A stretch of 62,902 nucleotides of DNA, the filler included, from Klebsormidium nitens (Eukaryota > Plantae > Klebsormidiophyceae), in NCBI GenBank assembly GCA_000708835.1. It is 7 parts of 7 records of this genome, joined end to end, with 100 filler letters (N's around TTAATTAATTAA, not from the genome) between each part and the next. Parts side by side here need not be neighbours in the genome. Positions count along the whole stretch, not along the records: positions 9,415 to 36,434 come from DF237816.1; 6 more parts are not named here. The stretch is one strand, 5' to 3'. Shown here one piece after another: positions 9,415 to 34,300 of the stretch. Both the position numbers and the translations under genes were made by a program. Every line of letters begins with the position of its first letter. The first letter of the stretch is position 1. The notes under the pieces are model-generated. The model saw nothing but the letters and a program-made list of their open reading frames with translations, was not told where the DNA came from and did not search any database.

Positions 9415-10891
9415 CACCACCATAGTCACAGTCCGGCGGTCGGTTGGCAGTCTGCCGATCGTACGTTCCGTTTCCACTGCCAAACTTTATCATATGCATT
9501 TAATAAATGCTATAATAATCCAGAAATTGATTGGATTTCCGTTGTTCCGCTGCCGACAAGGACACCGGATTCCGACTTAAAATCTCCCCTGTGGTCAAGA
9601 TTAGCGGGCCCCTATGTTCATTTATGGTCGCGGCACGGGAGGGTGTTAACACAGAAAAAAAATCCGGAGACACTAATATAATAGTGTACTTTGTCCTACT
9701 TGCCCCACTGCCCTCCCTGCCCTCCGGTTCCGTCCAACCGGTACACTCGCGAAACAACAACGTACACCACAGACTTCAAGGTACGTACCGTCGTTGAACG
9801 ACCTTTTCAAACCAAGAAATTAGTTCTGGCTTTGTGTAAAATTTTGCCAGATTATTGGAGCAAAGATTTTCCTGGTTAAGGCTTGGATTGACAACAACAC
9901 GGTATATAATACAAGGGTCTTAATCAGGGGTTAATGGGTTTGTGTGAAATGAAAAACGTGATTAACTACGTGTTGAAAAGGAGATGGTGTGAAAAGGTCA
10001 TGCGACTCGGTAGAAGGCCTACCGTACGGTACTCACTGCTCAGCTTCAAGGTTCCGCGTCGACCGAAAACTGCTGGGCTCACAACAGCAGTCGGCACAGG
10101 GGTCGGCACAGGTTTTTAGCTCGCCCATATTTATATGGGGCGAGCTGTAGCGGTCATCCGGATGTGGGGTCCGTCTGGCATTTTATTTCGCTGTACGACG
10201 TCACCGTGTTTAGGTGGTTAAATTCGCCGGTGGCGTCATACTGTGTATTTTCGAAAAGTTTAGGATTCTGTGAAATCCACTGTGAGTAAGGCCTTAATGT
10301 ACAGCAAAATCCTACCAACGAGAACCAAAAGATCTAATGAGCCCGTTCCTCGTCATACGACATAATCCAACGCCGTGTTTTTGCGGTTTTTTCGGGAAAG
10401 GGCAAACCAACTTGAGATTTTTCCTTAAGCTCCTTTTTTCACCTTTGAATCGTGTTAAGGTCTAACGTGCCAGTTTAACCCATTTTTCCCGGCGGTGCCG
10501 GGACGCACGACAATTTCCGTTTGGCCGCGTTTGGCCTGATTTTAGCAGTACATCGGAAACTGCTGCGTGGGGTATTGCTCCGGTCAGCTCTGAGATGAGA
10601 ATTGCTACCATACTTTAGACCGGGGCGCCCTCCCACCCACCCAAACGCAAGAGTCTCATATGATGTGACTAGAAACTCTTCAGATCTTTGGTTTTAGTGC
10701 AACCTAAAATGCTCAATATTGTACCGGGGCCCGCACGGGAATCAATCTTGCCCTCCCACCCGCCCCACGCAAGCGAATCGGGGCGCCCTCCCACCCACCC
10801 TCATTAAAGCTTTTCTATTTTATAATGCTTTCTATAAAGAGGCGAGCTGCTAAATCCGCCGAAGGCGGATTGTGTCGTCCTAGTTGGAAAT

Positions 10892-11066
10892 GTCGGCTCA
10901 AAGCCGACTGCCTCCCAAATTCATCGGCTTCTTGCTTGGATTTTTGGGTACTTGTCGGCTTTTGGCAGAGGGCCCTGCCTCTGGTGTCGGCTTTCGAGCC
11001 GGGTACTTTTCAATTTTGTCGGCTTTTCCCAAAATCTTGTGTCCTGGGGTTCACTGTTAGTCGGCT
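10892..11066. repeat. Phased array of GTCGGCT (= AGCCGAC, DRE/CRT-core-like) motifs
   Basis: Copies at 10892, 10923 (ATCGGCT variant), 10954, 10986, 11018 and 11060; spacings 31, 31, 32, 32, 42 nt. Confidence 0.75.
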
Positions 11067-11394
11067 TATGCCGACCCCTGGAAGCCTCTCGAGTCACAAG
11101 CTTTGCATCTCCGATCCGCGTACAGCTTTGTACACTGCCTCTCTAGCAAAATTTTGTACCAGGTCTGTATTTCTCATGCCACGTGATCGATCGAAGGGTT
11201 CTCATTGGTCCGAAGGACCGGAGATGAGCGCTCAGACATTTCGGTCGACGCAAAACCTGTCGCGATGTGGCATCTGCAGGCTCCGAGATTTTCTGGAGTC
11301 TGCAAACCAGCCCTGAGCAGTCTGCCAGTGACTGCAATATTGTGCATTGCTGCTTGCATGCATGCATTGAATTTTGATGCAACCGCCTGTTGCC

Positions 11395-11752
11395 GTACCA
11401 GGTAGGGTACGTTGCTACGTGTACGGTTTAGGCACTACCGCAGATATATGTATACGGTATGTACTATGTACCGATATCTGGAGGTTCTTCCATGCAGTGA
11501 ATTGGTAGAGCAGACTGCCGTACCTACTGTCAGTATACCGGTACCCGTACTGTGGGTATGTACCGTACCGGTCCTGCTTCAAGCCTTGAAGGCTCATAAG
11601 GTACCGTGGTCCGCATAACATGTAGGTAGGTAGGTACCGGGCGCTCAAGTGGCTGACCTTTGGGCTCTCGAGTTGAATACGGTATGGTGTGTACGACGAG
11701 GTACGGTACCCAAGGGCCAAGAAGGATTGAAGCCTCCAGGTTTGTACCGTAC
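11395..11752. repeat. GTAC-dense segment
   Basis: 17 GTAC tetramers counted in ~360 nt, against 1-2 expected by chance. Confidence 0.8.
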
Positions 11753-11781
11753 GATAGATTTACCGTATTGAATACCAGTAT

Positions 11782-12236
11782 GGCCCTCTTCCATCTAGCG
11801 GTCGGTCTTCCTTTCCTAAATTCCCATTGGCCAAAACCCCCTTTTAATACGGAGAACCGGTCTTACACTGAGCGGTCTTCCGAAAACTTCCGTGCCACGT
11901 CGGCGGTCAAGAAGTATTTATTTTACTACCGCTGGATTCCGCCGGTACTGAAATAATCCCACCGGTCTTCCGAATTGATCGGTGAACTCGGCCAATGAGA
12001 AGGCGGCGCGCACCGTGGGGGCTCGAAACCCAATGATTGAGTACAAGTCTGCACTGGTGTTTCCCTTTTCAACACGAAGACCGACCGGAAGAAGGACCGG
12101 AGACCTCTTCCATTGAGTAGCGGTCGGTCTTCAATCTTCTAAATTCCTATTGGCCAGCTTCACATTCCTCCGGTCTTTCTAGCTGGTCTTCCATTTTTGA
12201 ATTCACGAAGACCGACCGCTAGATGGAAGAGGGGCC
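11782..12236. mobile_element. MITE (~455 bp) with 27-bp perfect TIR core and 3-bp TAT target-site duplication; possibly PIF/Harbinger (Tourist)-like
   Basis: CCCTCTTCCATCTAGCGGTCGGTCTTC (11784-11810) is the exact reverse complement of 12207-12233. Ends are GGCC...GGCC, flanked by TAT on both sides. An internal copy of the left end lies near 12105-12155. Confidence 0.75.
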
Positions 12237-15155
12237 TATGTACGATAGTTTATATCGAAATTTAAAATGAGTAGATTGAGCATATTGAGCTATATACGTA
12301 ATATATTTAACCACCCTTGAGGCGACGGGTGGAAATAACCAATTAAATCTGGGTTTATAGTGGGTGCGTGAGCGCAAGCAGATAGGTAGATTTCAATTTT
12401 CAGGGTTTACTATTTGGGCTGTTTTATTAGCTGGAAGTTCATCGTTCATAAATTCCTAGGCGATTAGTCTTGACGAAGGAGTTTTCTGGAGTCGACCGTG
12501 TCCGATTATCGATATTGCGTGACGCGGCCGTGGTCAGCGCCGATTTGGAAAATCTGCTGATGTCAATGACAAGAAATGAGTCCGGTCGGAATCTGACTCC
12601 TGAGTACTGACTGCCGACGTCAGTCACGCACCGCAAATGCTGGCGCAAGACCGGACGGCGAAGGCGGCGTTTCTCCTAGCAGTACTCCCTTCGCTGTGTC
12701 ATCTCTTTCTGTCCAAACATGGACACCCACAAATTGACACTCAATATTTATATGGCTCCTCGGATCCGGATTCCGGTTCCCAGGCTCGCTGTCATGGTAG
12801 GTACGTCAGAACCAGACTCCGAAGTCAGCACTGCGGAGTCCGGACAGAGCCTGTAGCGTCATAAAATTGCCGGTGCCAGCATTCTACCGGCTTCCTTACA
12901 TCCCTACCGGCTGACTGGGCGGTTTAGACTACCGGGTGACTGTCCAACATGGGCGCCTAGATCTATCTTAGCCGGCTCTCTCAACCGGTGGGTTCCAATA
13001 GACACCGGGGCATCTTTCATTTCAGGCCGGTTTCCTCTAGGAGCAGTGCTCAGTTGGTCGCAAATCATGAAGCTGATGACTCGGTGTCACCGTCTTCTTC
13101 AGATCAGCTGAGCTGGTTGAAAAGAAATGAGAGGCTGACCTTTCTCTTTGCCCCGCAGAAAATGGAGGCGGGGTTGGAGTCTCAGACTCAGAGATCTGGG
13201 CCGCAAAGCTAGGGGGATGCCTCTTTCGCCGGATGGAGAAGGCGAGGATCAAGGAGTGCGCCTCGGTTTATATTTTCTGCTGAGAATATCAGGGGTGCAA
13301 GGACGAAGTCTGGCAAAGGCCTTGGAAACATGTCAGAAGAAGGATCGGACAGTGATTTGGTGGTTGTAGAGAACGATTGGAGGCTGCAGACCAGAGAGGA
13401 GCATGATTGAGTGCTTCTAGAGCTGGATAAGAAGGTTCAGGGGGTTGTACCCATCTAAAACGAAGCAATGCAACCACATAGATGGTGAAGAAATCCGCGG
13501 TGTGCTTGGGGATTGCACCGGCACTGCCAGCTGAGGTACGCTCTGCCCTTGTTGGGCTCAGTTAGATGCAGTTTGGCATCGGTCTTCATCTCGGGGGTTG
13601 CTGTCCTAAAGTCCAGCCGCTGTCTTGCATACCCTGTACCTTTTCATCCGTTGTCTGGTTTGGTTTGACTTTGAAGCGGTTGCCACTTCAAGTACTTTGC
13701 TGAAATGCAGGGCGTTCAGTGGTCTGTTGTGAAACAAACACAGGCAGTGGCATCTTGTATACATCCTTCTCATGTAGCTTTATCCACCGCTTTTGTCAGT
13801 GAGTTCTGACATTTCAATGAAGGTAATCAGGGCGAGAAACCCTTGTCGAAGATAGCCTTTTTTAGTGCATTGTGTTTCTGCTGCCAACCTTTTGGCTTGC
13901 AATGCTTGGTGACCAATCTAACCTGGTGACCATCCAGTTTCAAAGTCACCTCTTTACCGTATGCCAAACTTGTTTGAGAGAACCTCGTCTTGTATTTGGG
14001 GAGTTGCAGGGGTGCATTTGGATGTTGCAAAACTCAAATATGGAGATCGTTGTAGCTTACTGCTTCTGATCTGATGATGGAGTCTTTAAGAAGTGATGAA
14101 GTGATACCATGTATTGTTAGCTGTACCTAGTAGAGGGAAAGGCCAAGCTGCTTCAGATGCGTGTCAACCTTTTGGGAGTGTGGGGATTTGATACCTGTTG
14201 CAACACTGCCGTGCATTACTGATACTGAAGTAGAGAAGCCTTTAATTCACAAGGTTTTGCTACTGTCTTTGCAATGAGAGGGTTGACAGGGTTGACCGGT
14301 TTGCTTGTCCCTGCGTGCTCATGTCGCATCTGATGCAAAGAACGCCCTTGGGAGGCTGTAAGCTGGTGCTCTTTCATTTGTAGTAGGTGCTGTTGCCTGC
14401 CTAAATCTAACTTGCAGGATCCTATGTCTTACCATGTTTCATCAAAAGAAACCATGAAGATTCGTGGGGCATGTAGCAGCTTGCCAAGTCTGTACATGCA
14501 GGACATCAATCTGAACTCCTATTCCTTTCCTGTGCAGGTCGCCTGTACGTTCACAAAAGGTCACTTTAGTCAGCCTGACAGACAAGCACAGAGGCCAGTC
14601 AGACCCTTGGTTAGCCAGGCAACCCCATACGAAACCCTAATTTGTCAACCTACCCATATGGTTACCAACCGCTTAGCTCGTCGCCCTTTGTTGTAGCGTA
14701 GTCTTTGCCCACATTCTTTTGGGACCATACAGTGCTGGCAAAACAGGCGACTTTCAATACAGCGCATAGGAAGGACAGGGACATCAGTCACAGCTTGCTG
14801 AAGCACCCGCCGAGGCTTTGCTCTGTCTGGACAAGTCCCGGGACTCAGCTTTGGTGGAAGTGACCTTACGTGTAGTGGCAAAGCTCGCAGGGTCAGTCTG
14901 TGAAGAGCAACAGGGCTTAAATGCGGCTTGCGCAAGCATACTTTGGCGGAAGCATAATTCTGAGTCAACTTAAGCAAATTCTCAGACAGTCAGCCGCCTT
15001 TTCGCATACACCTTTGCAGTGAACTAGCTAATTGGACCAATGCACTCAATGCACTCAGCTGGCAGGCCATGCCTGGGTTGCAGCCAGTCGCGGTTCCAGC
15101 AGCTCCCACCACTGTGGCTTAGACTCCAAGTCACTGCCTAGCAGAAAGGGTAGAA

Positions 15156-18100
15156 ATGGAGAGCGAGCGCCTTAAGTCATATAGGAGATGGTATAAGGAG
15201 CTAGACGCCAGGAAGGCTGAGCTAGAAGAGGAGGGTTTGGAAGACCCCCGCACGCTGAAGCTCCTGGAAGGGGAGCTGCGCTGCCTAGAGGAACTGATCA
15301 CGCTGGACTCCCAGCTTATGTTGCACCTGCCTGATGCTTGTGGACAGGGAGGCCCTCCCGATGCTGAGAGTCTCGTTTCAAGGTGAGGCTTGCTGCTTCA
15401 TCAGCTCATTCTGGCCATCTTACAGGGGGGGGCTTTTGTCCGAGCATGTGTACTGATAGCTTGGCCTTTGCAAGCATGATTGGCTCTTTTACAGAGCTGG
15501 GACCCTCGGGCACCACCCTCGGGCACCTGCTAGTTGTCTTAGATGAATTGGCTGTACCTTCTTAGGAAGGGAAGGTGAACTCTTAGCGGACACCTGCTTT
15601 TAGTGTCAGGGGAAAAGTTGTAGAAGTTGGTGTTCCAGGGCTGAGGGCCACATGTATTGCAGCCCCCTTGTGCTTGGAAGTTTCGTGAGACTCACTGTGG
15701 GCAGCCAGACAAAATCCTGAACGCAGGTTGCCTGCTTAAAATGCGATTCCTCTATGATGGAGATTGTCCAAGGTTGTCTTTGTCGCTGCTGAAAAGTTTT
15801 TCTGCTTGTCAAAAAGTTCTTACACTTGTTGCAAGTTGATATGGTTGTGCTTTGAATGAAGCATGGTCCTTTCACCGAAGTCTTGCTGAAGTTGGTGTTG
15901 CTCTAACATCCATCTTGCCCTCCCTGTCATTTTGAAGTTTTGTGTTTTTTCAGCTGGAGCCTCGATAAGCCCCGTATTGGTGTCGCGGAGCTCAGTGTGT
16001 AAACCTGGAGGGTCTATCTGCAGTGCCTCATCTCTTGTTGCTCAATAATGCGCTGTAATGTAGAACCTCCTCCTTCGTCCTGGAAAGAGGCTATTCATGG
16101 AAAGAAGTTTCAGCTGTAGCTTTCAGTATCAAAAGGAAGGCATCCTCGCAGCTTTCAGAGCTTCCTTTCGTTGCATTGACTTCACTGAGGCTGCAGTGTC
16201 TTAGCACGCCCCTTTGGTGAGCTTTTTGTGTCTCCTGCTTCTTGCAGTTTTCTCCTGCTATTTTGTTCTTTCTGCTAGGACAAACCTACAGGCACAGTTG
16301 CGCGCCTCTAGCTCTCAACCGAGCCCTGTTCCCCCTCCCACTCAAGTGCATGATTTATCTTTTCTCTCAACCACTTCCCCACTTCTCTTCCCCCCCTTCT
16401 TTACTTCTTGTCCTTCCTTCTCCCAGCGCTGTGCTGAAGCACTTTGAAAGCCTAGGTCCCTCCAACATATCTTTCTTCCTTTGTCTTTCCAGGCTCTTTG
16501 TCTAGGTCAGAAACAGTGTCACTGGAGGGTTGAAGCTCCACTGTATTTGCATACTGTCCAGGGTGTCAGATATGCAGTCCTGAGCCCCTTCCTCTGCCTC
16601 TTCACCCTCAAAGGATACCTGATTGTTGATATGGTTTCTATGTGAAACAAGTCTGTCTTCCTTTAGTATGACAGACGCACCTCCCTTTCTTTTCAAAAGA
16701 TTAGAGGTGATGCAGGTTTCACAGGCACTTGGAATCCCAACGTTTTGTTTTCTGCCCCCAGAAACGTATCCACATGGCCAGGCGACAGCGGCCTCCCCCC
16801 GGTGGAAGGCCTCGACCTCTCTCTAGTTACGGACATGCTCATCCTGAGCGCGACCTCCCCTTGGGTGGTATTTGTCGCGGAGCGCTTCAAGTGGAACACG
16901 GTCTACGTCTCGCCCAGTGCGAAAAGGCTCCTGGGGTGGCGGCAGCAGGAGCTGGTTGGCGTCCCTGTGAGCGACAGGTGTCATCCCGACGACGTGCCGA
17001 CCATGCTCAATGTGAGTGTAGGGACCTCGCAGCTCAAACTGCTCAAAGTTTTTTCATAGTTCTTTCCAATCTCAACCAGCATTGAAACAAATGGTCACCT
17101 TTCCCAATTTCAGTGGCCGTATGAATCGTCTGTGCTATTCTACGCAGTCCACTTTGTGTGGTCCCAAATACCTGCAGCTTGATCTGTCTGTGGCATTGCT
17201 CTTTGGTGTCTGGCCCCTTCCATGAAAATTTTCAAACAGGTCTTCACTTTCTTTGTCACTATCAGTTGAAACGATTGCTGCTTGAGCAGTCTGGTGCAAT
17301 GTTCAGCAGCTGTTAAGTATCACCCCCAGTGGCATTGTCATGCCCTCTTCTTGTAGTTTAGCTGGGCAATTACCGAATCTCGCTTGTCTATGTCAGTCAT
17401 GTTAGGTAGTGCTAACTTTACTTGGTCAAAGTGTGTCCAAGTTTGGATAGTCAAGCCCGCATCCTAAAAACCCTCCTCTAGTAGTTACAGCTTTTGAATG
17501 TAAGAACCTTCTAAGAACCAGCCCCCCTGGACAAGGGGTAACTGCTCAATATCAAGGCTGTGAGACCAAACTCATGTCAACCCAGTTTCCTCTGCGCTGG
17601 CGCACTTTCTCACAATAATCCACTTTCCTCTGTGCTGATGCAGATGTTTAATGCGGGCGCAAACTCTTCCGGTAACAGCCTGTACTACCGGAGGATGCGG
17701 CGCGACCGGAGCTACGTGGCAGTGCAAGGGACGGGGCGCATCCTCGGGCAGCGGTGGTTCGCTTGGATGGAGTTGCTAGTCGCCGAAGCAGAGCCAGCGC
17801 CGCCAAGCGGGGTTGGGGTAAGTATTGGTGGCAAGGTTTCTTATGAGCGTACTTACGTCTGGTTGATTTGGAGGTTGTGATTTTTGAGTGGAAGCCCGAG
17901 TTCGCATGGACGGAGTTACTGGTCGCTGAAGCAGAACCAGCACCGCCAAGCGGCGTTTTGGGGTAAGTTCCTGAGTGAAGTTAGGGCTCGGTTCAGTATT
18001 TCGAAGGTCTCGGTTTTGTTTGTTCTGTGAGTTGCTTTGTTTGCAGACAAGGTTAAGATACTTGTGGTTTATTGTGACGAAAGGTTGCTTCAATGGAGTT

Positions 18101-21100
18101 GCCGGTTGCCGAAGCAGAGCCAGCTCCGCCAAGGGAGCTGGGGTAAGGTTTTGTGCAACGTTTTCCCCGCTTGTTGGAGCTCTTGTTTATATTTGTTTTG
18201 TATGTGCAATGGTTGCAGACGAGGTGGAAATTGTGGCGATTAAGCTAACACTAGTTTGCTTGGCTGGAGATGTCGGTTGCCGAAGCAGAGCCGGCATTGC
18301 CAAGCTGGGCAGGAGTAGAGTTCTGTGCAAAGTTTTGCAGTCTGTTGAAGTTGTCATTCCGGGTAGTGGTGATGCGGTGTGGGCGTGACGGTCTCCTGCG
18401 AACCGCTTGGGTCTCCTGCGAGTCGTAATTGATGTGTCTATGTCTCTTGTCCGTCTGATTCAAAGGCGTCTCGCCAGGTCCAGATTATTGATCTGGCTGG
18501 CCAAGGCTACGTTTACATGGTCAGTTTTCTTTTCAAGCAATTTTGTCCTTCAATCTGAAGGATGAAACCTCTTCTCCTTGGTTTTGCAAGATCGAAGCGT
18601 GCACCCGATCCACCAATCTTGCATTTATTCAAGTTGGTTTTTGTCCTCCTTTCCGTTTTCTTGATTCTGGTCGGACCTTCCAGAATGACTAGTGCACCTC
18701 TGTTCTGGACCTGCTTGAAAAATAGATGAGGTGACACCTATACTAAAGAGCACCCGCCCTCGTTTTTGCAGTCCCCAATGAGGCGTGCCAGCCCCCCCTC
18801 CCCCCCCACGTCAGCACGCTCACGGCTGATGAGGGCCCCCACCCCCCCGGACATGCCAAGCCTGCCGGCCACCGCTTTCTTCCCGGGGGCCGGCAACAGC
18901 TCTTTCGCCTCTTTCCCTGCGGGGGGCAACTCTCTCGCGTCGTCCCGCAACCTCTCCTCCCAGTCAATCAACGAGCTGGTCGCAATGCCGTCCGTCCGGC
19001 ACTCTCTGGGGGGCAGCCCGCCAGCTGCCAGGCAGTCTTCGAGCGCCCCCCTGAACGAAAAGAAAGAGTTGGTTCACTCCATCGGGGGGTCATACGTGGA
19101 GCCGCAAAGGGCGTCCACTGGGGCTCTTCCAGTGGGGCCGCTAGAGATGGTGCGCCGGAAAGGGTCGCGGCCGACGTCTCCCCTCTCGGAGCAGGACTCG
19201 GAAGTGAGGAACTTAGCTGGAAGATTGAATGTTCATCACGTGCTTGTCACTTCCTCCGAGCTGATTCTTTGCACGGCTTTGGGTTGTACATCGACTAAGT
19301 CTTGTATGGCACATCAGAAAAGGAGGCAGTTTCTGTTGAGACGTGGGGTCCACATTGGGCAAGCTTCCGCTCGTCACAAATCTCAATTATTGCATAGCAC
19401 CTGGGCTGCTCGCCTCGCTTGCTCATCTTGCACTTTATGTATTCAGCGACCACATCATCAGAACTGTATTGCAAGGCAGTTTCACAATGTCTGGAAGGTT
19501 CACATTGAGTTTTGGTTCTGTCTCTCGACTCCGCCTTTCTCTTCCGCGACAATCGTTCTTGGCCATAGAGTTTCGAGTAGGGAGGAAGAAACGCGTCTTC
19601 TCTCGTTCCTGCATCCCATTCTCTCTCAAGAGCTTTTGCAACCGTGTCTGATCATGAGAGGCTCGAGTAGGATCTGAACACAATCTTTCTGTCGCCCTTG
19701 CAGCAATCTTTCAACAGCGGCCGTTACAACGGCCAAGACGTCCTGGGCTTCAGCCACAGTACCGGCGCCCTGGGGCTGAGCAGTTCCGCTCTCAACCGAA
19801 CGATCCGCCCGTCCGAGGGACTTCGCTCAGAGACCCTCGTATCTATGGTGCGTCGCCCCCTAGTTTTGAGAGCTCTCTTTTGAAGCTTATCGCAGTGCAG
19901 GCTTTGTCCGAGGTTCTTCTTGCAATTACTTCGTGATTCCTCGGGAGTTCCCTTTTTCTATTGCTCCGCTCATGTTTGCCACTTCTCTTCTTTGCTGCAC
20001 TTTTTGACAGGTGTCCTGGGCTGTGTAGCATGCATGAAAGCCCCTGAGATGATTGCTTGTGCTACAGAGCTGCCTCTAAGGCCTTCTCACCATAGCTCAC
20101 TCCTGCATATTTCGTTACTTAATCGAGCTTTGCTGTGTACCCGGCTCTCCGCTTTTCATACTGTCCTCAGAACTGGCGCACTATTTCTTGACATTTGCGG
20201 GGACGAAGCTTAGGGGATTGCTGTGTTTCTACTGTCAAAACGCCGTTATACCCGGTCGTAAACTTCCTTTCATCTATGCATATCGACCCATTGGACCGGT
20301 CTTACTTTCCTTTCATGTTCCAAAAGCTATTTCTTCGGTTATTGGTTCTGGATGTGCAAATGCTTTGATTACAGTTCTTGAATTCCGGATTTGCAAAAGC
20401 TTTTATCCAGTTCTTGGTTCCGGGTCACTGAAATTGTCTTCCTTCTCTTTCTGCAGAACTCCGCCGAGCGCCTGCGAACCCTTTCTCACCGCAGCTCCCT
20501 CCGGGGGTCCGGCTCGAGCGGAACTCCCAGCAACAGCTCCCCCAGTGTCGAGAACGGCGCCCCCCTTCTCCCGAGCGAAATCAAGTTATTCCCGCGCCAG
20601 GGGGCTCAAAATGAGCCGCACATGAGCCCCCCCTCGCAGCCGCTCTCGCGCAGCGGGAGCGGTTCCAGCGGCGGGGGGAAGTCGTTGCCCCCGGGGACTT
20701 CAAAAGTGGGGCTCGAGTTTGCGTACGGGGCCCTCGTCGGCGAGAAGGAGGGGGAGCGGGAGCTTCTGCGGACGTCCGTGGATTACGAGTCCGTTTTGGA
20801 CGCGTCCGGTTTGGTGGGCACTCCGCTGTACAAGGAGGCGAGCAACGTGGATCTGGGTGAGTAAAGGAAGCCTTAAATTTTGCGAAAACGCCTTTCAAAA
20901 CTTTTAGATCACCTCGCAGGCGTCTTAGACAAGATGGTTCTTGTTTGTACGTTTCCTCGCTTGGAGGTCATGCGTTCTAGGCCATTTAAACCGGACGTAT
21001 GTAGTCAGTTTCCAATTCTGGGTCAACACATATCCAGAATCCAGGGTCAAACTTTCGAGCCTCCAATTTCTACGGCCCCGGTCCACGAGGAATGTAAGAA

Positions 21101-23886
21101 CGTTGCTAGTGAATCTTTACTTCCTTCTTTTTTCGCGCGGTAAGGTTGTTCTCCCGGTTCCGATGTTGAATATCCAATCGCTCCGGAATCTGAGCGGAGG
21201 CCGCTGTTAAACTCGTTGATGAGGCTTCGGTCGTTAAACAAAGTCGCTCCCCTCTCAGCGACAACTGAAGTTGTGGTTTGAGAGAATGTTCAAAACTCGA
21301 CGGAGTATCGTCCTCGGACTTGGCTGATGAACAGGAGTGTTCTCGGCTCCACGACATCCCAAATCCCCCACATCTGAAACTGATACCTTAGAACCTTGAG
21401 GATCTAAACCCCACAAAAGCCTCTCTTTACTTCGAATGTCCATCAAAGCCCCGTTTTCCTGTCGTGCAGATGACCAGGAACGCTGGCGGCTTCAGAATGA
21501 GGAGAGCAACTCCGATATCGGCCTCTCAAACTCGATCCTCGTGCCCGTCTCCGGGGGAGCCTCTCCCAAGCTGCCACCTGTCAGCGGTAAAGTGGCCGGA
21601 GAACCCAATTCCCGATACCGGACCCGACCTGCCCCCCCCCCGCCCGTAGGGCTTATGGCACCCCCCCGACGACTCCGTTTGCGGCGGAAGTTGCGGCCCC
21701 CGTTCCTCGCCCCCCGGGGGGGAAGCCCGAGGGGGAGTTGGACGGGATCCGTGGGGCGCGCGTGCTGCTGGTGGAGGATGATGTCACCAACCGGACGGTT
21801 GGGCAGCGCCTGCTGGAGAGCCTGCACGTGAGTCTTTCGGGAGTTGCTTATATGGTTTGTGAGTTGTGAGTTGCCGTCTGACGGCGGTGCAAGTGACTTT
21901 GGAACTCGAAGCGAGCTTGAATTCTGAGAAGCTCTAGGTCCGGGTCTGGAACTTTTTTGTGGTTTGATTGTCCTTTGCTTGCGAAGCTGGCTTGGATCGC
22001 TTCAGCGGAGTGGAAGACCTGACGATGTGAACCCAACGACTAAGATTGAGAATATGCTTGCCATGTGGTTCTGGTGTTTGACGGATATCGAGAAATAGGA
22101 CGTGTTCGAAAGGTTTGTGTTTAAACCTTGAAAGTGCGGTGTGATTTCGCAGCTTGCAAATATTGACATGGTTGAAACACCGTATGTCTAGTGAACGTGA
22201 GGCACGGAGCAGCTTTTCGGACCTAAAGAGCTTCTCGATTGTTTGTGGTCGCTGAACTCTCACAATCAGAACCCTCTCCCGCTCTCTTTTTCTGTGTGGC
22301 CCAGCTTTCTGTTGTAACTTCGCTTCTGGCCCAAAGGCGATATCGAGGACCTCTCTCTGAACCTTCTTTGATTTGGCTCTGTTCTGGATACGTGGAACTG
22401 TCCGCTTCGATCCCGCACTGAGAGGTGACCATTTCCAGCGGCAAGGAAGCTTTAGTTTGTGAGGCTTACCCTCGAAAAGGACTTCCCCTTTTCAAGTCTA
22501 TGGATGGTCTTGAGTGAGCACATATTTACCGTGCAGCTTAAATCTCGTCCCACGCAGTGCGAGATGACTGTTACGTGCAACGGCAAGGAAGCTTCAAAGC
22601 ATGAGGGCAAGCAGGAAATTCGTTTTTGGCGTGATTCCTGAGAAGAACGGACTATGTGAGGATACACAAATGAAAGTGGATTCTGTGAGGAGCACAATGT
22701 CATGGTTCTGAATCGCTTTGGCTTCCCCCACGCAGTGCGAGGTGACTGTCACGTGCAATGGCAAAGAAGCCCTGGAGGCGATGCGGGGCAACCCGGAGGA
22801 CCCCTTCTCTCTCTCGGAGTTAGGGGAAGACGAGGAGCTGCCCCCGCGGTTTGACCTGGTGTTAATGGACCTGTTAATGCCGGTTATGGACGGGTTACGA
22901 GCGGTGGAAAAGTTCCGGGACGAGGAGCAGGACCAGAAGCCCCGGCGCAAGCGGATGCTCATCTTTGCGCTCACGGGGAACGTTTCGGGTAAGTTTCAGG
23001 GGTTTAGGGTTTCTGAGTACGTGGTCAGCCTTTGCCTTTAAAAGCTTGACCTGTCACAGGTGGCCACGTGGCAAAGCGGAGCCGTAAGAACGTGTTCGTG
23101 TCAATTAGTTCGTTCTGAAGCAGTCTCCTTTCAAATTGGGCCATCCTTGCGTTTGTAAGTGGGGCTGGAGGTCTTTTTGTTAACCACTTCAGCAGTTTGG
23201 TCTGGCGGCAGGAGCAGAGCAGGAGCAGATGTCCCGGCCTCAGAAGGAGCTCTTTCGTGCACTCTCTTTGAACCTCTTGAGTGAGTTTGGGGGATCTGGC
23301 GGGTTTGTCTTTCTGGTGTATAGGGGGGAGCTTGCAGTATAGTGACTGCAGCATGTTGTTACTAACACGGAGTTGAGGTGATGCTGATAACCAAGCTAGT
23401 TCTGATTTAAAACGAAATGCAGACCGTTCTATTCAGTGGCTAGGTAAGAGTGGGCCAACGATGCACGTTACTCAAAAGGGTCACAGTATGTGTTGCGGCA
23501 AACAGGCTTGTTGGATTGCTCTGAAATCTGGCTAATTCATGTTTTGGAATCATTTAAGGGCCGCCGAGAGGTTTGGCCTCGGACTCACATATGAGGACTT
23601 TCTGCAGTCTTCGCAGATGATCAATGTGAGCGAGGAGCTTCACAGTTTCGCAACTCATGTCGCCACAAACGCTGTCTACAAATGCTTTTCGACTTCGGCC
23701 TTTGCCTCAGACTGCTTACCCCTTTGTGCAGATGGCGACATGGTCAAGTGTGCCCAAAGTGGCTTCGACGAGTTTGTCAGCAAACCGCTCACTGTAGAGA
23801 AGCTTCTCCATCGGCTGTACGGCGTTTGCAAAACAACGGATCGATTCCCTGGGTTGCGTACGAGCAACTTCGCGTTGCCTTCTTAG
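15156..23886 (+). CDS. PAS-domain + C-terminal receiver (REC) protein with no histidine kinase core, ~800 aa; exons 15156-15382, 16762-17011, 17644-17817, 18772-19203, 19704-19847, 20457-20856, 21470-21827 (1-nt frame break at the C10 run 21632-21641), 22736-22988, 23732-23886
   Basis: PAS: WNTVYVSPSAKRLLGWRQQELVG...CHPDD...YYRRMRRDRSYVAVQGTGR. REC: ARVLLVEDDVTN...FDLVLMDLLMPVMDG...IFALTGN...GFDEFVSKPL (DD, phospho-D, T and K all conserved). All introns are GT-AG with consistent phases; the linker is Ser/Pro-rich. Confidence 0.8.
17765..18310 (+). repeat. Four tandem diverged copies of the 3' end of exon 3 plus its splice donor (~55 nt each)
   Basis: GAAGCAGA anchor at 17785, 17928, 18111 and 18282. 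Copies 1-3 end in GGGGTAAG. Confidence 0.85.
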
Positions 23887-26975: not shown

Positions 26976-27270
26976 GAGAAAGAGAGACTGCAATTGAAGG
27001 TTGCAAACTGTGGAGAGGACTATGATTCGCAGGTAAATAGGAAGTTGGGGCCCTTTCTGGGAGAAAAGATGGTGGTTCCTATAGGTCCCCTCAGAAAAGC
27101 GTCCCAATGCTCTGCTTTGCGGGAGAGAAAGAGAGACTGCCAAATCATAGGTTGGAAAGTAGGGAGAGGACTATGATCTGCACGGTTGAGTAGATACTTG
27201 GGGGCCCTTTCCTTGAGAAAAGATGGTGTCCCTGATAGAGCGCCTCAGAAAGGCGTCCCAATGCTCAGCT
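26976..27270 (+). repeat. Diverged tandem duplication, period 149 nt
   Basis: GAGAAAGAGAGACTGC at 26976 and 27125; GGGGGCCCTTTC..GAGAAAAGATGGTG and CCTCAGAAA.GCGTCCCAATGCTC occur in both copies. Confidence 0.8.
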
Positions 27271-28331
27271 TCGCAGGAGGGGACTGGCGAACCACCCGAA
27301 GCGGGCATGAGTGCGCTTACCTCAGCAAGGAAGTCAAGCACCAGCTATCCTGCGCCAGACTTAGAACAGGGAGAGGATGTGCAAGCGGCACCAGGGCAGA
27401 AGAAGAAAAGGTTTCTGAAGAAGTATGACATTCTCTTCCTTCGGCTGGCAATCATGGTGAGCAAATAGACAAGAGAATGCTTGGACTTGACACCACAAGC
27501 TGTCCCTATCCATAAATTTAGCAATCTAAGTGATGAACCTTCTGATATGATGAGACCTTATCACTCAATTTCCTTGTGCATTTTATTGGCCCCAGTCCTT
27601 GCATCCTTCTAACCAAATTGGTAAAGACACAACTCTACACCTTCTTACACTTGGTTTCCTAACTGTCAGTCAAATGGATCGAAGCTCAAACACGGGCAGG
27701 CAGTTCTTTCGAATCCGGTTACGTTCTCACTTCGAAAAGAAATACCGCCTAAGTCAAATGTGCTATAAGGCATTGCCAGAAGTCACAGGCTGGCCTTTCC
27801 AAAATGAACCTACTTTTCTGCGATTGCTGGCTGTGTATTCGAAGGACTTCTTATCTTCTGCGTACATGCTAACTTGACCAAGCCTAGCAGGCCTACTCTA
27901 CCAGCTCCCCTTCAATGCATAGGGCATTCTAGTCAGCGGAAAGAGGACTAAAGCGGACCAGTCAATGGTGCCACAGATAGGCCAAACTCAGTCTCAAATC
28001 AGCTAAAGCCTGAAATCCCCCGACCTGTGGTTGTAGAGAGCTGCAGTTGGAGAATCGCTTACGTATGGTTGTCAAGGGTGAATGATCCAAGACTTTTCGT
28101 GTTTGTCCAGAGGTCCTCAGATTTGAAGTTGAGTCACAAATTAGGTCCTAGCCTCAAGGAACAAACAGACGCGCAGGAGCCACGTACGAAACCCATTGGC
28201 AGAGTCTTCTTTCTCCGTACGCGAAATCAAAGAGAGTTGACTAAGCATCGCATATCTCTTTTATTCATTTTTTTCCGAGCACTTTTGCTACTGAATGTAG
28301 ATCTCTGACGAACCGCTCTTCGCGTGTGCAG

Positions 28332-31300
28332 TTTACGCTGGCCTGCCTCCTATCAGGCAGCACCGCCCTGAGTTTCTTCTTGAGCAGCGCAAGGTGCCGC
28401 GACTCGCTGACTCAGCTCGTCCAGTCGTATCAGAACGACCTCATCGAACGAACTTCGGACGACGTCTTCAATCTTTTCGGGAGTGGCGAACTTTGCGCGA
28501 GGTTCTTAGTGGGATCCATGCAAAGGATCCACGCTGCGCGAATAAATTGGACGAACGACACCATAGATGATCTGGTAAGCTTATCTGAGGCTATGGTTTA
28601 CCCTTCCTGTTCTAGTACCTGTTAATATGTACTGCAGGGCTTCCTTCATACAAACCGGTCGTTTCACTATGGCCTACTTCTCTTCTTTGCAGCTTTTGGC
28701 TCGAACATAGTGAAACTTCTGCTAAATTTCTATTCAATCTGGTGTTGAATGGCTTACTCGAGCAGGGAAGGTGCTTTACAGTGCACAGAATCAAGCTCAA
28801 TCTATTCCAAATGGCAACCTCTGATCAGTCATGACACAACCGCATGAGACAGTCTACGGTGGGTTTGATCAATGCTCTTAAACGCCGAAAGAGTATCGCA
28901 AGTAGCACAATCTGTGGCTTGAAAGGTCGAGCAGAGGAATTGGACTCTCTTTGATTTCGAGAGAGGTTTGCAACTGGCAAATTCTGTCGTTTGAAAGGTC
29001 GAACAGAAGAGGGAACTCCTGTGAAAAGGCGCCTTTGAAAGGCCTGCGGCTCCGTTGTGATGTGACACTTATCGTATCTGCAATCGAAGTCGGATTCACA
29101 TTGCGCATTCCGAGAACAGCTTTTCTGAAGAGTGCACAAATGATAAGGCGCTTCGCAGGCGCCTTTTCAAGAATGGAGCGTCATTGGCGTCGCTTAGTGC
29201 AAGACCGCCAATATTTTCGCCGCAATATTTTCTCCGCGCTATTTTCACCGTAAGATTTCCACCGCAGATCAAAGAAGCAATCTTCGGCACCTTCACCGAC
29301 TGCGCTCAGACGTCCTCGCTCGGGTTCTTCAAGGGAGACGGCACTTACATTTCGATCAGCTCGAGTGACAAATTCACGCTGGGGAATAGTACTACGTCAA
29401 GTCGTATCCAAATGATGTTCAACAACGAGACGACGCCCGCAGGTCAACTGCCTCGAAGGTTTACTACGGTGAGGCATATGTTCTAACGTGGCTTGAAAAT
29501 CGCTTTGAAGCTGGATTGTGCTGTCTGGAAACCCTTCCATCTATCGCCATTGTGCTGTCCGCAAAGCCTTGTGCTGTCGTATTAAAGTGTGGAAGAACTT
29601 CAAGGGTGCGCAGACTTATGCGCTTCAGTGATCGGTTTCGAACGCAGCACGTTTACCAGATCGACAATAGACGAAGTTTCCGCCCTTATTCACGGTTGGT
29701 GGAACGGAAGCTAGCTAACCAGACGTGAACGGTCCTCGCCTAGAAGAAGGACAGCCAACCAATTGACTAACCAGCTGTCTTGGTTGACGATGGTCTCTTG
29801 CTGCAAAAATCTAATAGCCGACCATGCCAGGCAAAGCAGGAGTTGATTTCAATCACCTGCGCACAGCGGATTTTTAAGGGCTCACGGTGTCCGCCAAAGC
29901 TCCAAAATGACTACTTTCCTAACCACGCTTTGTTAGAGAGAAACTAGTACTGGAAGTACGCGGCTCTAGTTTGACCCACGAGTTAAGGAGCCTGAAAGAG
30001 CCGATACCAACCATGCTCTTCAGGGACGGGCAGACTTTCCACGCATTTGGCGCCCTGTCAATCAATGAGACTGGTCACATGAAATCATTGATCAGATGCT
30101 CTCACAGTACCGACATCAGTGCAGATGCGAAAATTTCGCCTAGCTCGCTTCGAATATTGTGCTGGATATTCGTTCACCTACGCTGGAAAATCTAGCATGT
30201 TTACCCGTTTAGCGCCAAAGAAGCAGAATTTTGCACTTGCAACTTGCACTGTTCTTTTCGCAGCTTACCGATCTCGCGCAAACGTTTTGGACAATGAAGG
30301 ATTGAGAGAACTCTACGAAATCTTTACAAGAATCCCGAGGGCCACTCTTACCGGAAACACGGGCTCTCTTGCTTTGTCGGCCATTCAGAAGCCACTTTCG
30401 GACGTCTCGCTACAGTAGATTGAAATGTTATCCTACTCTCTGGATCCCTCCTCTTTGGGCGATAAGTACCCCTGATCTCTGTAACGTCCTCACTCTTGTG
30501 CGACATCTAACCCTACTCTTCGTAACCCTCCTCTTTCAGCAATACTAACTCTCCACTTTTTGCGACAGTACCTGGCAGAAGACACGGGCGAGCCCCTCAG
30601 CCCGCCGCGCGAAGTCGCGCGGCTCGACCCGCGCGCGCGCGACTGGTACAATCAGGCACTGCACAGCGCAGACGGGCTGGCTGAGCAAGTTTTGGTCGGC
30701 ATAAGCGGGCGGCCGCAGTTGTCCCTCGGGAGACGCGTTACCCACCCGACCAACGGCCGAGTCTTGGGCGTGATTGGATTGTCCTTTTACCTGACGACGA
30801 TTAGTCGCTACATGAGCGAGTTCGACCTAAAGGGGGGGCTGATGTATGTAACAAATGGGACCATGCTAGTTGCAGACACAGTCGGGGATTACGCGGCGGC
30901 CACCAACGTTTCGACGGGGGGCCTTTTGCCGGCCAGCCAGTCGAGCAGTCTAGTTGTGCGCGAGTCGTTTGCATATCTGAAGAGCGTGGGGCAGGGTAAT
31001 ATGAACGTGTACTCACTGAGCGGGGGGCAGGGTATAAACGCGTCCGACGCGAGTAGTACGTTCCGCGAGGTGCGCCTGGGCGGGGCGCCGTACTTTTTGC
31101 AGTACAAGTACCTGCAATTCCGCAACATCGTTCTACGGCAGGTGCGTGGTCTCGATCCTTATGGTGAAATACGGCTACAAAGCAGCGATAGCGAGTCTTA
31201 ATATGCAAATATGCTAACTTCCATTCAAGCATATGACGTTTCTCGACTTGTCGGCACGAAAAATTCCGTTTTACCTTCCGGTCCTCCAATGGCCATGGTG

Positions 31301-34300
31301 AATCTAGCATACTTAGAGTGAGCATCAATCAGAAGAGAGGACATGAGGGGAAAAGAAGGGGATTTGGCAGTCCCGTCCCATCTTGTCCACGTACTTTTCC
31401 TTGATCCTGTGAACAAGATTATACATAATCTTATGTTGATTCAGGTCATGCCCGGAAGACGAGTGCGAGGCGCATGAACTTTGAATATCGGTTTTTTGTT
31501 TTTTATGAGCCCGGGGAACTAATTATCTAACTCAGCATACACCTGGTTCAACATAAAATTGGGACTTTTTGGCAGGTCATGGTCCTCCCGCGCGACTCCA
31601 TCATGCGGCCCATAGACAGCGGCGCGCGTTACACCAAAGCAATCGTCATCGGCGTAACGGCCGCGACCTGCGCGCTAGGGTTTCTGCTGATCGTGCTGTT
31701 CACGGATCCTGTCAGCAAGGAGATGCGGCTCAAGGCGCAAGTGATTGAGAATCTGGAGGGGAGGCGGCAGGCGGAGGCGCGAGAGGATTTCAAGACGAAG
31801 TTTCTGGCGAGGACCAGGTGAATGATCTATTCAATAAGCAAAACCCTATCCAAAACCCTTTTCTCTAGAGCATGCACGTGCCAGCTTTTAGCGTGACGAC
31901 ACAGCTTTGATACGCCGAGCGTTCGGATCCATTTCGATCCAGATTAGATCTAATTCTGTCCGAGCCCACATCCGAACCGCACAATTCGGATCTGGTTCGG
32001 ACCTGGTCTGGAGAAAGCCTTTTTCTAAAATCTGAGCCTTGGAGCGGAAGTCAGTACTTCTTCCCCACAGTGACAAGACAGAATGCTAGTGGTGTGTCGT
32101 TCATAATTTTCACAGATCGACAAAGCTGTGCGTTGTCCGATCTTCAGAATAAGTTCTTGCCAAGGTTGAAAAGTCGGAGCTGAAGATTAGGGGTCTCCAA
32201 CGTGCCAATCACTCTTGCGTACTTGATTCCACTTTGAAGCGCTTGACCTTCAAGCCGGGAGGGTTCTTAGGAGGAATAGGTAAACGAGCTAGTCGGCGTT
32301 TTCGCATTTGTCTTCTTTATCAAAAAAAAATTTAGGAATTTCGATATACGAGCTTGTCAATCTATTCCGCATCACATAGGAGGGGTGTGGCTGCTGATAA
32401 GGCTTGATAAGCAGATCTTTGAGACCGGTTATTTGTCCAAAGCTCGGGCTGCGAGCATGTTAAAAGGCCGGTTCCTGCTCGAAGCTGGTCACTTTACTTC
32501 TAACCAACTATGATCAATCAGCTCCAATATTAACGGAGCTTGCTTAACCGGCCTTGATTGACCAACCTTGGTTAAGCGCCGAAACCGAAAGACATATTGC
32601 GTGCAGCCATGATCTTCGGACCCCCTCCGCGGCTATGCTGGGGCTGCTCGATGTGATTTTGGAGTCTTCGCTGGAGACCGATCAAGCGGACCGAGTGAAG
32701 CAAGTCAAAGAGTGCGCGCTCACACAGCTCAAACTGCTGAACGACATCCTGGATTTCAGCAAGGTCAGGACGAAATCTCAACAACCACCCTCCCTGTTCT
32801 AGCGATTGTTCTGATGAAATACTTTCTCAGAACCGGCAGTTTCAGCTTTGAACGTTCTATCTTTTGTGCTACATAGCTTTTGACTTGAACCGACTGGAAG
32901 TCCGCTTTCTTTGTATTTTCCTACTGGACGGCCTACTGGATTAGGAGGGCGATTTTCTGAGTATCGATGTCAACTTTGAAGATGACTTCACAGGCGATCG
33001 GAAAGGTTGACCAGCTTCTATGCTCTTTCACAACCTTCCGCAGGAACAAGACTCGTTTGGTCTTTCTCCGTTCGATTCTAGCATAACTGCCGGTGTTCCT
33101 TGCGAGACAGCACAGGAGCGTGCAAATTTTGCGCAAAGCTTCCTTCGGGGGCATCTAAGACTCTGGTTTCGCAAAGCGGAGCATGCGAAGATGCTTCGAG
33201 AAGAATGATTCACATCTTTTCTTTGCTGTCCTTTAAATCTCTGGACCAAGGCACAAACACCTGAACTGAAGAGCAGGATATCAATGAATTCCGAACGTCT
33301 TGAGACCAGGTCTTTAACTGCTTGCCGCTTGCTGAGGCCAAAAGGGCGCTTGGTGAATATTCAACTGGTGCACGAGAGCACATTGCGAGTCGCAAAAGCC
33401 CTATCTTTTGTGGAAACCATTCAGTTAACTCGTTCCGGTTCCATTCCCTGTGCAGATTGAAGCAGGAAAGATGCAGCTCGAGAACGAGCTGTTCGACATA
33501 GGCAATCTGCTAGAGTCGCTGGTTGATATCTTCAGCGTACAATGCACAGCAAAGGGTCTAGAAGTTGGCTTGGACATGGACAGTGAGCATATTCGCACTC
33601 GCTTCGCCCAACGATCCAAACCCCTTGTCCTAGTCTTTGTTCTGTATAACATATTCATACAAACGGGCCTTTTTAGCATGTTCTAACACCCTTCTATGCA
33701 ACTTTCGGTCAAAATGTGCGCTTTGCATGCAAGTTCGTGCTAAAACGGGTTACTAGAACCGGCGGGGTGAATGTCAGTGTCGATCTTCAGAAGCAGTTTG
33801 CCTCCTCTCGTGCTCATTTTTGTTCATCGCTCAACTGCAAGCATCTACATGCGGGTGAAATCTGACACGCAAGGGCAACTCCATGGATCATCTTTAACGT
33901 CACTTCAAACTTGAAGCGTCACAAATCCGTCTTACGCAGCGCTCTGTCAAATTCATGAACCGTTTTTGTAACGTTTACTGACAGTGCTGCCCACGGTTCC
34001 AGGCAATCTAATCTAATCACCGCACTTGATAAAGAAGATTCTGGGATCTTTGGAATTCACTATTCTCGGATCCACTCTGATCAAGTCCAAGCAGGATAAA
34101 CGTTCTCAGATTCGGCTGAGAAAGAAACATCTCAGACTTGCTACTCTTCTGCGCAGACGCGGTTCCAAGGATGGTGCGAGGTGATTCGACGCGTTGCAGA
34201 CAGATCTTCACGAACCTGCTAAGCAACAGTATCAAGTTTACTAAGGTTGGAGCTTTCTCTAGTCTCTTTCGATCCCGTACACTTCACATAACGGATTCAG

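Follow-up and report, generated by a model that had tools for sequence, protein, structure and literature searches.

The window analysed here, a 62,902-nucleotide stretch of Klebsormidium nitens DNA, contains on its DF237816.1 scaffold piece a gene for a protein with a PAS domain and a receiver. The coordinates of its coding sequence (15156-23886, + strand) coincide exactly with those of the CDS of GenBank GAQ91844.1, which agrees in gene, strand, start codon (ATG at 15156) and stop codon (23884-23886). The GenBank entry is named as a receiver-plus-PAS protein, and the automatic UniProt name is "histidine kinase". No runs of N lie inside the scaffold piece, a search of both strands of 9415-15155 for further coding exons revealed no protein-like open segment upstream of the gene, and neither Rfam nor a tRNA scan gave a match in the piece. 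The GenBank model and spliced RNA contigs together confirm that the gene proposed by a sequence-only reading of this locus is real.

The gene is transcribed and spliced to one mRNA encoding a helical hairpin, a PAS domain, a linker of about 400 aa and a hybrid-kinase-type receiver. Spliced RNA contigs from four runs of four studies connected the PAS exons with the receiver exons via six GT..AG introns (17011>17644, 17817>18772, 19203>19704, 19847>20457, 20856>21470 and 21827>22736), with no additional exon between them; for these six joints, the contigs supply the RNA-seq check that the sequence-only reading had proposed. The joints 15382>16762 and 22988>23732 lie outside the read-covered stretch; both have GT..AG sites and were placed by homology and by the GenBank model. 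Exon 1 (15156-15382, this and all following features being on the + strand) matches GAQ91844.1 and contains the start codon and the conserved N-terminal hairpin, with an in-frame stop at 15120 ahead of the start and the donor GTGAGG. Exon 2 (16762-17011), with PAS_3/PAS matches and a donor at 17011 confirmed by RNA, encodes a variable spacer and the first half of the PAS domain, and exon 3 (17644-17817), both joints of which were found in the four runs, encodes the second half with its conserved strands. Exons 4 (18772-19203), 5 (19704-19847) and 6 (20457-20856), all with RNA joints and none with a Pfam match, encode the linker, which in exon 4 is Ser/Pro-rich and unconserved in orthologues. 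Exon 7 (21470-21827) comprises the linker end and the receiver start with its acidic pair, and the RNA contigs spanned 21469-21827 without any joint, indicating that this exon is unbroken. Exon 8 (22736-22988; Response_reg match; 57-70% identity to orthologues) encodes the receiver core, including the phospho-acceptor Asp and the conserved Thr as well as an acidic insertion specific to the family. Exon 9 (23732-23886), defined by GTAAGT..CAG sites and phase, encodes the receiver C-terminus, the conserved Lys and the stop, and is conserved in the transcript-derived orthologues P0002 and P0184. Single exons alone gave partial PAS_3/PAS and Response_reg matches in Pfam.

The earlier statement that all exon phases match does not hold for exon 7, which is out of frame in the window as given. 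The frame shifts at a C10 homopolymer in this exon (21632-21641), where the RNA has C11 (three runs) or C12 (one run). Joined as the RNA defines them, the exons of the window add up to an out-of-frame CDS of 2393 nt; because the RNA has one extra C, the reading frame into the receiver is restored, giving 2394 nt and an RNA-supported protein of 797 aa. The C10 run probably reflects an error of assembly or a polymorphism, and scaffold DF237816.1 probably carries a homopolymer error. Moreover, the public model GAQ91844.1 holds one exon and one intron without RNA support. The small phase-keeping intron in exon 7 is unused in RNA, and the extra 32-aa exon in intron 3 is missing from RNA, which joins 17817 straight to 18772; among aligned orthologues this segment is unique to the GAQ91844.1 model (P0172). 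The extra exon falls in a stretch of degenerate tandem repeats (repeat family D1, 17900-18336), in which the exon-3 end and its 5' splice site are copied three times at about 70% identity. A second repeat family, D2 (22549-22592), is a 91% identical duplicate in intron 7 of the exon-8 acceptor and the first 35 nt of that exon. The D2 duplicate is unspliced in the main transcripts, as four of four runs join 21827 to 22736, and contig depth across it was 3-11 versus hundreds across the exons. Sequence analyses were performed with the exons and with sub-ranges of GAQ91844.1 that avoid its two mis-modelled segments.

The hairpin consists of two helices (residues 4-26 and 31-57) and is kept in all orthologues. 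The AF2 model also shows it as helical, with a disordered spacer after it and then a confidently predicted PAS fold that has a five-stranded core (pLDDT about 80-87). None of eight orthologous N-termini gave an HLH or any other Pfam match to the hairpin at E<=10. The PAS domain of GAQ91844.1 matched PAS_3 (PF08447) with 41.1 bits against a cut-off of 25.6. The top Foldseek matches were PAS structures, with ARNT ranked first at 27-29% identity, and the 43 matches of the PAS profile to the PDB at E<=1e-3 were all animal bHLH-PAS or PER proteins (ARNT, E 4.8e-15). The alignment of the N-terminal region and PAS domain from Klebsormidium to lycophytes showed 48% mean column identity, and hairpin and PAS together are the most conserved portion of the protein. 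Throughout the family, a Cys-His pair and many aromatic residues stay unchanged, and the His-Pro-Asp-Asp stretch around this pair can also be aligned with PAS-A and PAS-B of ARNT. A two-copy complex prediction for residues 1-212, in which the alignment was unused, scored 0.00 and is uninformative either way. The linker between PAS and receiver is disordered and unalignable among orthologues, with Ser (19%), Pro (11%) and Gly (10%) as its richest residues; its length is about 400-430 aa, as against the roughly 450 aa given in the sequence-only reading.

The receiver is C-terminal, followed by 30 aa, and matched Response_reg (PF00072) with 63.1 bits against a cut-off of 30.2 (residues 638-772 of GAQ91844.1); all full-length orthologues exceed this cut-off. 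All family members share the Glu-Asp pair that follows strand 1 and the Asp within the Met-Asp-Leu motif, the Thr and Lys-Pro are retained in each orthologue with a complete receiver, and the phospho-site positions align with the same positions in the hybrid-kinase consensus, so that the phospho-relay residues are intact as claimed. The hybrid-kinase flavour read from the motifs LMDLLMPVMDG, IFALTGN and FVSKP was likewise upheld: the motifs are present, and the nearest 40 non-family receivers are mostly kinase-borne, with HATPase_c in 33, HisKA in 31 and Hpt in 17. In addition, the best PDB sequence matches were histidine kinase receivers (8phn, AHK5, AHK4, SLN1 and CKI1), and in hhalign comparisons with 40 hybrid kinases the receiver alone aligned, at 99.9% probability. 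Pfam found no match to HisKA (H-box) or HATPase_c in the exons and open segments tested or in eight family proteins, and a domain search of the protein returned PAS_3 and Response_reg only. Pfam, RNA and hhalign therefore agree with the sequence-only reading that HisKA and HATPase are missing, and the spliced contigs of the four runs contain none of the kinase exons that it had named as a refuting case.

Proteins of the same architecture occur in Spirogloea, Closterium, Physcomitrium, Ceratodon, Calypogeia, Selaginella and Diphasiastrum. The helical hairpin lies at the N-terminus and is followed by the PAS domain, a disordered linker without conservation and, at the C-terminus, a receiver that keeps every phospho-acceptor residue. 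The range found thus comprises Klebsormidium, Zygnematophyceae, mosses, a liverwort and lycophytes. In seven orthologues from six species, Pfam assigned only PAS_3 and Response_reg, and the kinase is missing in orthologues of at least eight species. The Physcomitrium member, the one expressed orthologue there (XP_024375476), is backed by precomputed Pfam annotation and a transcript contig. The word-based family search was limited to hairpin and PAS, as full-length alignment was dominated by low-complexity words and missed known members. No seed-plant member appeared among the top 150 listed 50%-identity representatives or in the one word-based search, which is moderate evidence that the family is absent from seed plants.

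The conservation of this architecture from Klebsormidium to lycophytes indicates a real family outside response regulator (RR) classes A, B, C and PRR, and an atypical response regulator belonging to none of these classes is the most likely identity of the PAS-receiver protein. The proposal of a new class is supported in that respect, and literature searches, accession numbers included, found no paper describing the family; however, the domains are annotated, the orthologues are deposited and prokaryotic PAS-plus-receiver regulators are common. We favour, at slightly better than even confidence, the reading that the K. nitens protein is a member of a family, conserved in streptophytes, of soluble PAS-receiver proteins that lack a kinase and act as atypical response regulators, with a putative function as follows. 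HPt proteins acting downstream of hybrid kinases would pass a phosphoryl group to the receiver, and phosphorylation of the receiver would alter the availability of the hairpin-PAS module, the presumed effector, as a dimerisation or partner-binding surface. The linker would be a flexible tether and may hold further regulatory sites. The family is probably older than land plants and was probably either lost or changed past recognition in seed plants.

Type-C RR receivers (ARR22/24) look kinase-derived, and type-C RRs have been proposed as phosphate sinks. It is possible, though unlikely, that the protein is chiefly such a sink or competitor, draining phosphoryl groups from HPt while PAS and linker set its location or stability; the hybrid-kinase-type receiver, as in type-C RRs, and the lack of an enzymatic or DNA-binding output domain recognisable by Pfam are consistent with this, but the greater conservation of hairpin and PAS is hard to explain if the receiver alone mattered. 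PAS domains frequently sense ligands, and the invariant Cys-His pair and many aromatic residues would suit a true sensor of redox state, light or a metabolite that gates receiver phosphorylation or dephosphorylation. We consider this improbable: the closest relatives are the PAS-A domains of ARNT and BMAL1, which function in dimerisation, there was no LOV, heme-PAS or FAD-PAS family match, and the His-Pro-Asp-Asp stretch around the Cys-His pair is alignable with ARNT as well. The label "sensor" in the sequence-only reading is accordingly not supported, as the PAS resembles the dimerisation-type ARNT PAS-A and no heme, flavin or LOV signatures were seen.

A gene for a dCache-HisKA-HATPase sensor kinase lies 3.3 kb downstream on the same strand, and the nearest called upstream neighbour of the Physcomitrium orthologue is a hybrid kinase. 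This arrangement would suit a dedicated partner, in which the PAS-receiver protein is a split receiver for the adjoining kinase. That reading is very unlikely, since no kinase neighbour was found within 10 kb in Selaginella, Ceratodon, Calypogeia or Closterium, and a tblastn comparison of pieces of the K. nitens kinase with the Physcomitrium locus detected no similarity between the comparable parts. A kinase may also adjoin by chance, because K. nitens has 67 HK genes (PMC6324907). Finally, although the C10 run breaks the frame of the window CDS and UniProt names the protein a histidine kinase, it is scarcely credible that the gene is an artefact, either a pseudogene with a frameshift or a mis-modelled hybrid kinase of which some exons were overlooked, a reading largely refuted by four independent spliced contigs without a further exon (three with the frame-restoring C) and by kinase-less orthologues in at least eight species, in a piece free of N runs.

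Plant two-component signalling is usually described by four regulator classes defined in Arabidopsis. If the range of the family of atypical response regulators holds, the early land-plant phosphorelay had an output branch invisible in model angiosperms, and this branch is directly testable because Physcomitrium has a single expressed orthologue and efficient gene targeting. We raise as a doubtful extension that the family is a fifth, ancestral streptophyte RR class with an ARNT-type PAS dimerisation module after an HLH-like hairpin as its output, a counterpart, under phosphorelay control, of the dimerising bHLH-PAS regulators of animals, and that it worked with the PAS-kinases of non-seed plants and was lost in seed plants.

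The best sequence matches of the family receiver are the receivers of hybrid histidine kinases (AHK5, AHK4/CRE1, CKI1, yeast SLN1 and bacterial kinases with Hpt), with which it shares the Asp/Asp/Asp/Thr/Lys site and the C-terminal position. Unlike hybrid kinases, the gene and its orthologues are without HisKA and HATPase_c, and the family receiver is further distinguished by an acidic insertion of its own, about 18 aa long, ahead of the strand with the phospho-Asp. Plant RRs of classes A, B, C and PRR (nomenclature of PMC5975490) are likewise kinase-less receiver proteins, and the family is presumably also downstream of HPt, but it has an N-terminal hairpin and PAS and a linker of about 400 aa. 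Type-B RRs have Myb/GARP after the receiver, whereas the K. nitens protein has no Myb match and its receiver is C-terminal; type-A and type-C RRs are small receiver proteins, from which the 797-aa protein is set apart by architecture; and PRR/TOC1 proteins lack the phospho-Asp and carry CCT, whereas the K. nitens protein has the phospho-Asp and no CCT match. The PAS-histidine kinases PHK1 and PHK2 of Physcomitrium, with homologues in Klebsormidium, Marchantia and Selaginella (PMC6137987), are PAS-bearing two-component proteins of a charophyte, bryophytes and lycophytes, a range similar to that found for the PAS-receiver family, which has one PAS and no kinase core.

The closest solved PAS domains by profile and fold are the PAS-A domains of animal bHLH-PAS proteins (ARNT, BMAL1, HIF and CLOCK), and the likeness to ARNT/BMAL1 PAS-A is an unexpected lead on eukaryotic PAS history. 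A two-helix element precedes the PAS at similar spacing in both, but only the PAS part of the K. nitens protein aligns with ARNT. In contrast to bHLH-PAS proteins, it has a single PAS, a C-terminal receiver and neither detectable HLH homology nor a basic region, for which there is no room because the protein starts three residues before helix 1. Prokaryotic kinase-less PAS-plus-receiver regulators have the same domain pair, and ESM Atlas bacterial and archaeal clusters with Response_reg and PAS reached a cosine of 0.90-0.93, a likeness in domain content alone, without order or alignment; beyond this pair, the streptophyte family has the hairpin and a long disordered linker.

The annotated range of GenBank protein GAQ91844.1 (UniProt A0A1Y1IM18, a 794 aa model on scaffold DF237816.1 of assembly GCA_000708835.1) maps to window 15156-23886, and the sequence-only reading, with identical coordinates, therefore describes a gene already annotated in the streptophyte alga Klebsormidium nitens. 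Nine exons with GT..AG borders were placed by hand, and no N runs occur within the scaffold piece. Public RNA contigs from four runs in four studies were placed on the 6-kb stretch 16900-22899; these contigs are spliced, indicating that they derive from RNA. The joints 17011>17644, 17817>18772, 19203>19704, 19847>20457, 20856>21470 and 21827>22736 were identical in all four runs, with zero letters between the two sides of any joint, and thus a single transcript connects the PAS exons (2 and 3) to the receiver exons (7 and 8). Exons 4-6, which lie between them, are Ser/Pro/Gly-rich, and no further exon between the PAS and receiver exons was found in the spliced contigs of the four runs over 16900-22899. 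The transcript accordingly joins PAS to receiver with no kinase exon, as had been claimed. RNA confirmation of the junctions, which had been proposed as a check, was obtained for these six; joints 15382>16762 and 22988>23732, outside the read-covered 6 kb, are supported by splice signals, phase and homology, and the equivalent of the latter is read straight through in the transcript-derived orthologues P0002 and P0184.

The claim that all exon phases match does not hold for the window as it stands. The RNA-defined exons total 2393 nt there, and the frame is thereby lost in exon 7, which RNA shows to be uninterrupted (21470-21827). The run of ten C at 21632-21641 is lengthened to C11 in the contigs of three RNA runs and to C12 in the fourth, and one added C gives 2394 nt, or 797 codons, with the receiver back in frame. 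We infer that the C10 in the window is an assembly homopolymer error or a polymorphism. The GenBank model bridges the shift by a small intron that is unused in RNA, and the sequence-only reading presumably used the same bridge. One X1 contig ends at about this C run. The GenBank protein also carries 32 additional residues between exons 3 and 4, where the RNA goes directly from 17817 to 18772. The 3' end of exon 3, some 60 nt together with the GTAAG splice donor, recurs as three further degenerate copies in tandem in intron 3 (17757-18336 with the original), spaced 143-183 nt apart and about 70% identical. The additional GenBank exon, which lacks RNA support, sits in this repeat region, and the copies could act as decoy or alternative 5' splice sites. 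The searches described here used single exon references or the parts of GAQ91844.1 outside its two mis-modelled segments.

A second duplication was observed in intron 7, where the exon-8 acceptor and first 35 nt recur at 22549-22592, 178 nt upstream of the original, with a weaker echo near 22420-22450. The duplicate is covered by low-depth contigs only, which may be pre-mRNA. A 96% identical fragment from another sample (P0001) starts MTVTCNGKEA, which fits the Met of the duplicate and not the Val of the true K. nitens exon 8. At the other end of the gene, contigs reach 1238-1448 nt past 16900 on the upstream side, exceeding by about 1.08 kb what exons 1 and 2 account for. Since no coding-like open segment was found upstream of the gene on either strand, and the ATG is preceded, 33 nt upstream, by an in-frame stop, the additional ~1.08 kb is read as a long 5' leader. 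This putative leader, implied by the transcript contigs, would occupy window positions of about 14070-15155 (about 1.08 kb or more) and, if contiguous with exon 1, contains 18 upstream ATGs along with short upstream ORFs, none longer than 90 codons.

Domain searches gave partial matches to PAS_3/PAS and Response_reg with single exons, and the whole protein matched PAS_3 (41 bits) and Response_reg (63 bits), each above the curated cut-off, with no match to HisKA or HATPase_c. Moreover, when the family was compared with 40 hybrid kinases by profile-profile alignment, the receiver alone aligned (99.9% probability) and nothing in the linker did. The suggested profile check thus upheld the absence of a kinase domain. 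Ser makes up 19%, Pro 11% and Gly 10% of the PAS-receiver linker in K. nitens.

The same architecture, which the sequence-only reading had proposed to seek in other streptophytes, was found in several lineages. A HMMER search with the exon-8 translation against 1.84 billion representatives returned a small protein set matching the entire exon at 56-96% identity, its unusual insertion included. Family members occur in an alga represented by Logan SRR8128905, whose receiver exon is 70% identical, in Spirogloea muscicola, which has three copies, and in Closterium spp. They also occur in the mosses Physcomitrium patens (XP_024375476, also seen as an intron-free transcript contig) and Ceratodon purpureus, the liverwort Calypogeia fissa, and the lycophytes Selaginella moellendorffii, where the NCBI pipeline calls the protein "probable histidine kinase 1", and Diphasiastrum complanatum. 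The Calypogeia gene (L007:10001-11467) is intron-free, its DNA translating directly to 488 aa, compared with eight introns in K. nitens. No seed plant or fern member appeared among the 150 representatives listed at 50% identity or in a word/length-window search, giving moderate sequence evidence that the family may be absent from both groups. The alignment holds three conserved blocks, namely an N-terminal helix pair, the PAS domain and the receiver. The helix pair and PAS domain together show 48% mean column identity across family lineages; the linker varies from roughly 190 to 430 residues with zero conserved columns.

The phospho-relay residues of the receiver, described earlier as intact, are conserved in the family: its alignment shows no variation at the Glu-Asp that follows strand 1 or at the Asp of the Met-Asp-Leu motif, and the Thr and Lys-Pro are retained in all orthologues with a complete receiver. 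These conserved positions line up with their counterparts in the hybrid-kinase consensus, and a family-own acidic insertion of about 18 residues precedes the phospho-Asp strand. Among the best 40 non-family receiver matches, 33 carry HATPase_c, 31 HisKA and 17 Hpt; the two that were located are intron-free genes, found in a bacterial genome and metagenome contigs. The top solved-structure matches are likewise histidine-kinase receivers (8phn, PA1611, AHK5, AHK4, SLN1, CKI1 and ETR1). By these comparisons, the nearest receivers outside the family appear to be those of hybrid kinases, in agreement with the hybrid-kinase flavour first assigned to the domain.

The N-terminal part was modelled by AlphaFold2 with the family alignment (mean pLDDT 70), which predicted two helices (residues 4-26 and 31-57), a disordered spacer (58-86) and a PAS fold (95-204) with a core pLDDT of about 80-87. 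No Pfam family, HLH included, matched the hairpin. Foldseek ranked ARNT chains from HIF-2/ARNT complexes at the top (27-29% identity over about 112 columns). In addition, the family profile gave 43 matches at E<=1e-3 against all PDB sequences, every one an animal bHLH-PAS protein or PER (ARNT 4.8e-15, ARNT2 2.8e-14, BMAL1 5e-11); bacterial PAS structures reached 6e-4 at best with a single-sequence query.

The protein would act most like a response regulator in which the part outside the receiver serves for protein interaction. HPt proteins would phosphorylate the receiver, the phosphorylated receiver may then alter how available the hairpin and PAS surface is to a partner or to a second copy of the protein, and the linker would serve as a flexible, possibly phospho-regulated tether. 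Taken as a whole, we rate this mechanism slightly above even; our confidence in the architecture is much higher. The strongest rival is a type-C-like phosphate sink; the strong conservation of the hairpin and PAS module fits poorly with a role for the receiver alone and speaks against it. Alternatively, the PAS domain may be a genuine ligand sensor, a reading against which its closeness to ARNT and BMAL1 PAS-A counts. A third rival is a receiver dedicated to a neighbouring kinase. The sole other called gene on the scaffold lies on the same strand, its start 3.3 kb further downstream, and encodes a sensor histidine kinase (27223-36434, +, truncated by the scaffold end), with a weak dCache_1-like region at 30.5-31.2 kb (+), HisKA at 32.55-32.80 kb (+) and HATPase_c at about 35.2-35.45 kb (+) followed by a receiver-like stretch. 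In Physcomitrium patens (CM009320.2, L003:1-1446), a hybrid histidine kinase of 1464 aa is found upstream of the orthologue at a distance of 8.5 kb, in divergent orientation. No kinase lies within 10 kb of the orthologue in Selaginella, Ceratodon, Calypogeia or Closterium, and therefore the pairing is not regarded as conserved. Just upstream of the kinase gene start, a 154-nt unit forms two tandem repeats (26976-27279, 80% identical); no Rfam family or tRNA was found in the piece. An artefactual gene is essentially excluded.

The proposal of a candidate new class stands in part. The family is conserved, and no published description or name was found in full-text literature, searched with all accessions included (Ishida et al., 2010 and Pils and Heyl, 2009 lie outside its scope); the bare domain observation is already known, the domains being annotated in public databases. 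A survey of eukaryotic kinases retained a protein only if it had two of the domains HisKA, HATPase_c and REC (PMC6324907), and the K. nitens protein would thus have been dropped. We regard the family as real, conserved, unstudied and easily testable, although not categorically new. The protein belongs to the receiver superfamily and the PAS_3 family, and does not qualify as a hybrid kinase, a type-A, type-B or type-C regulator or a PRR by the features that define these classes. Kinase-less regulators combining a PAS domain with a receiver are common in bacteria and archaea, a likeness in domain content. In contrast to animal bHLH-PAS proteins such as ARNT, which possess a basic region, the K. 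nitens protein has no room for one.
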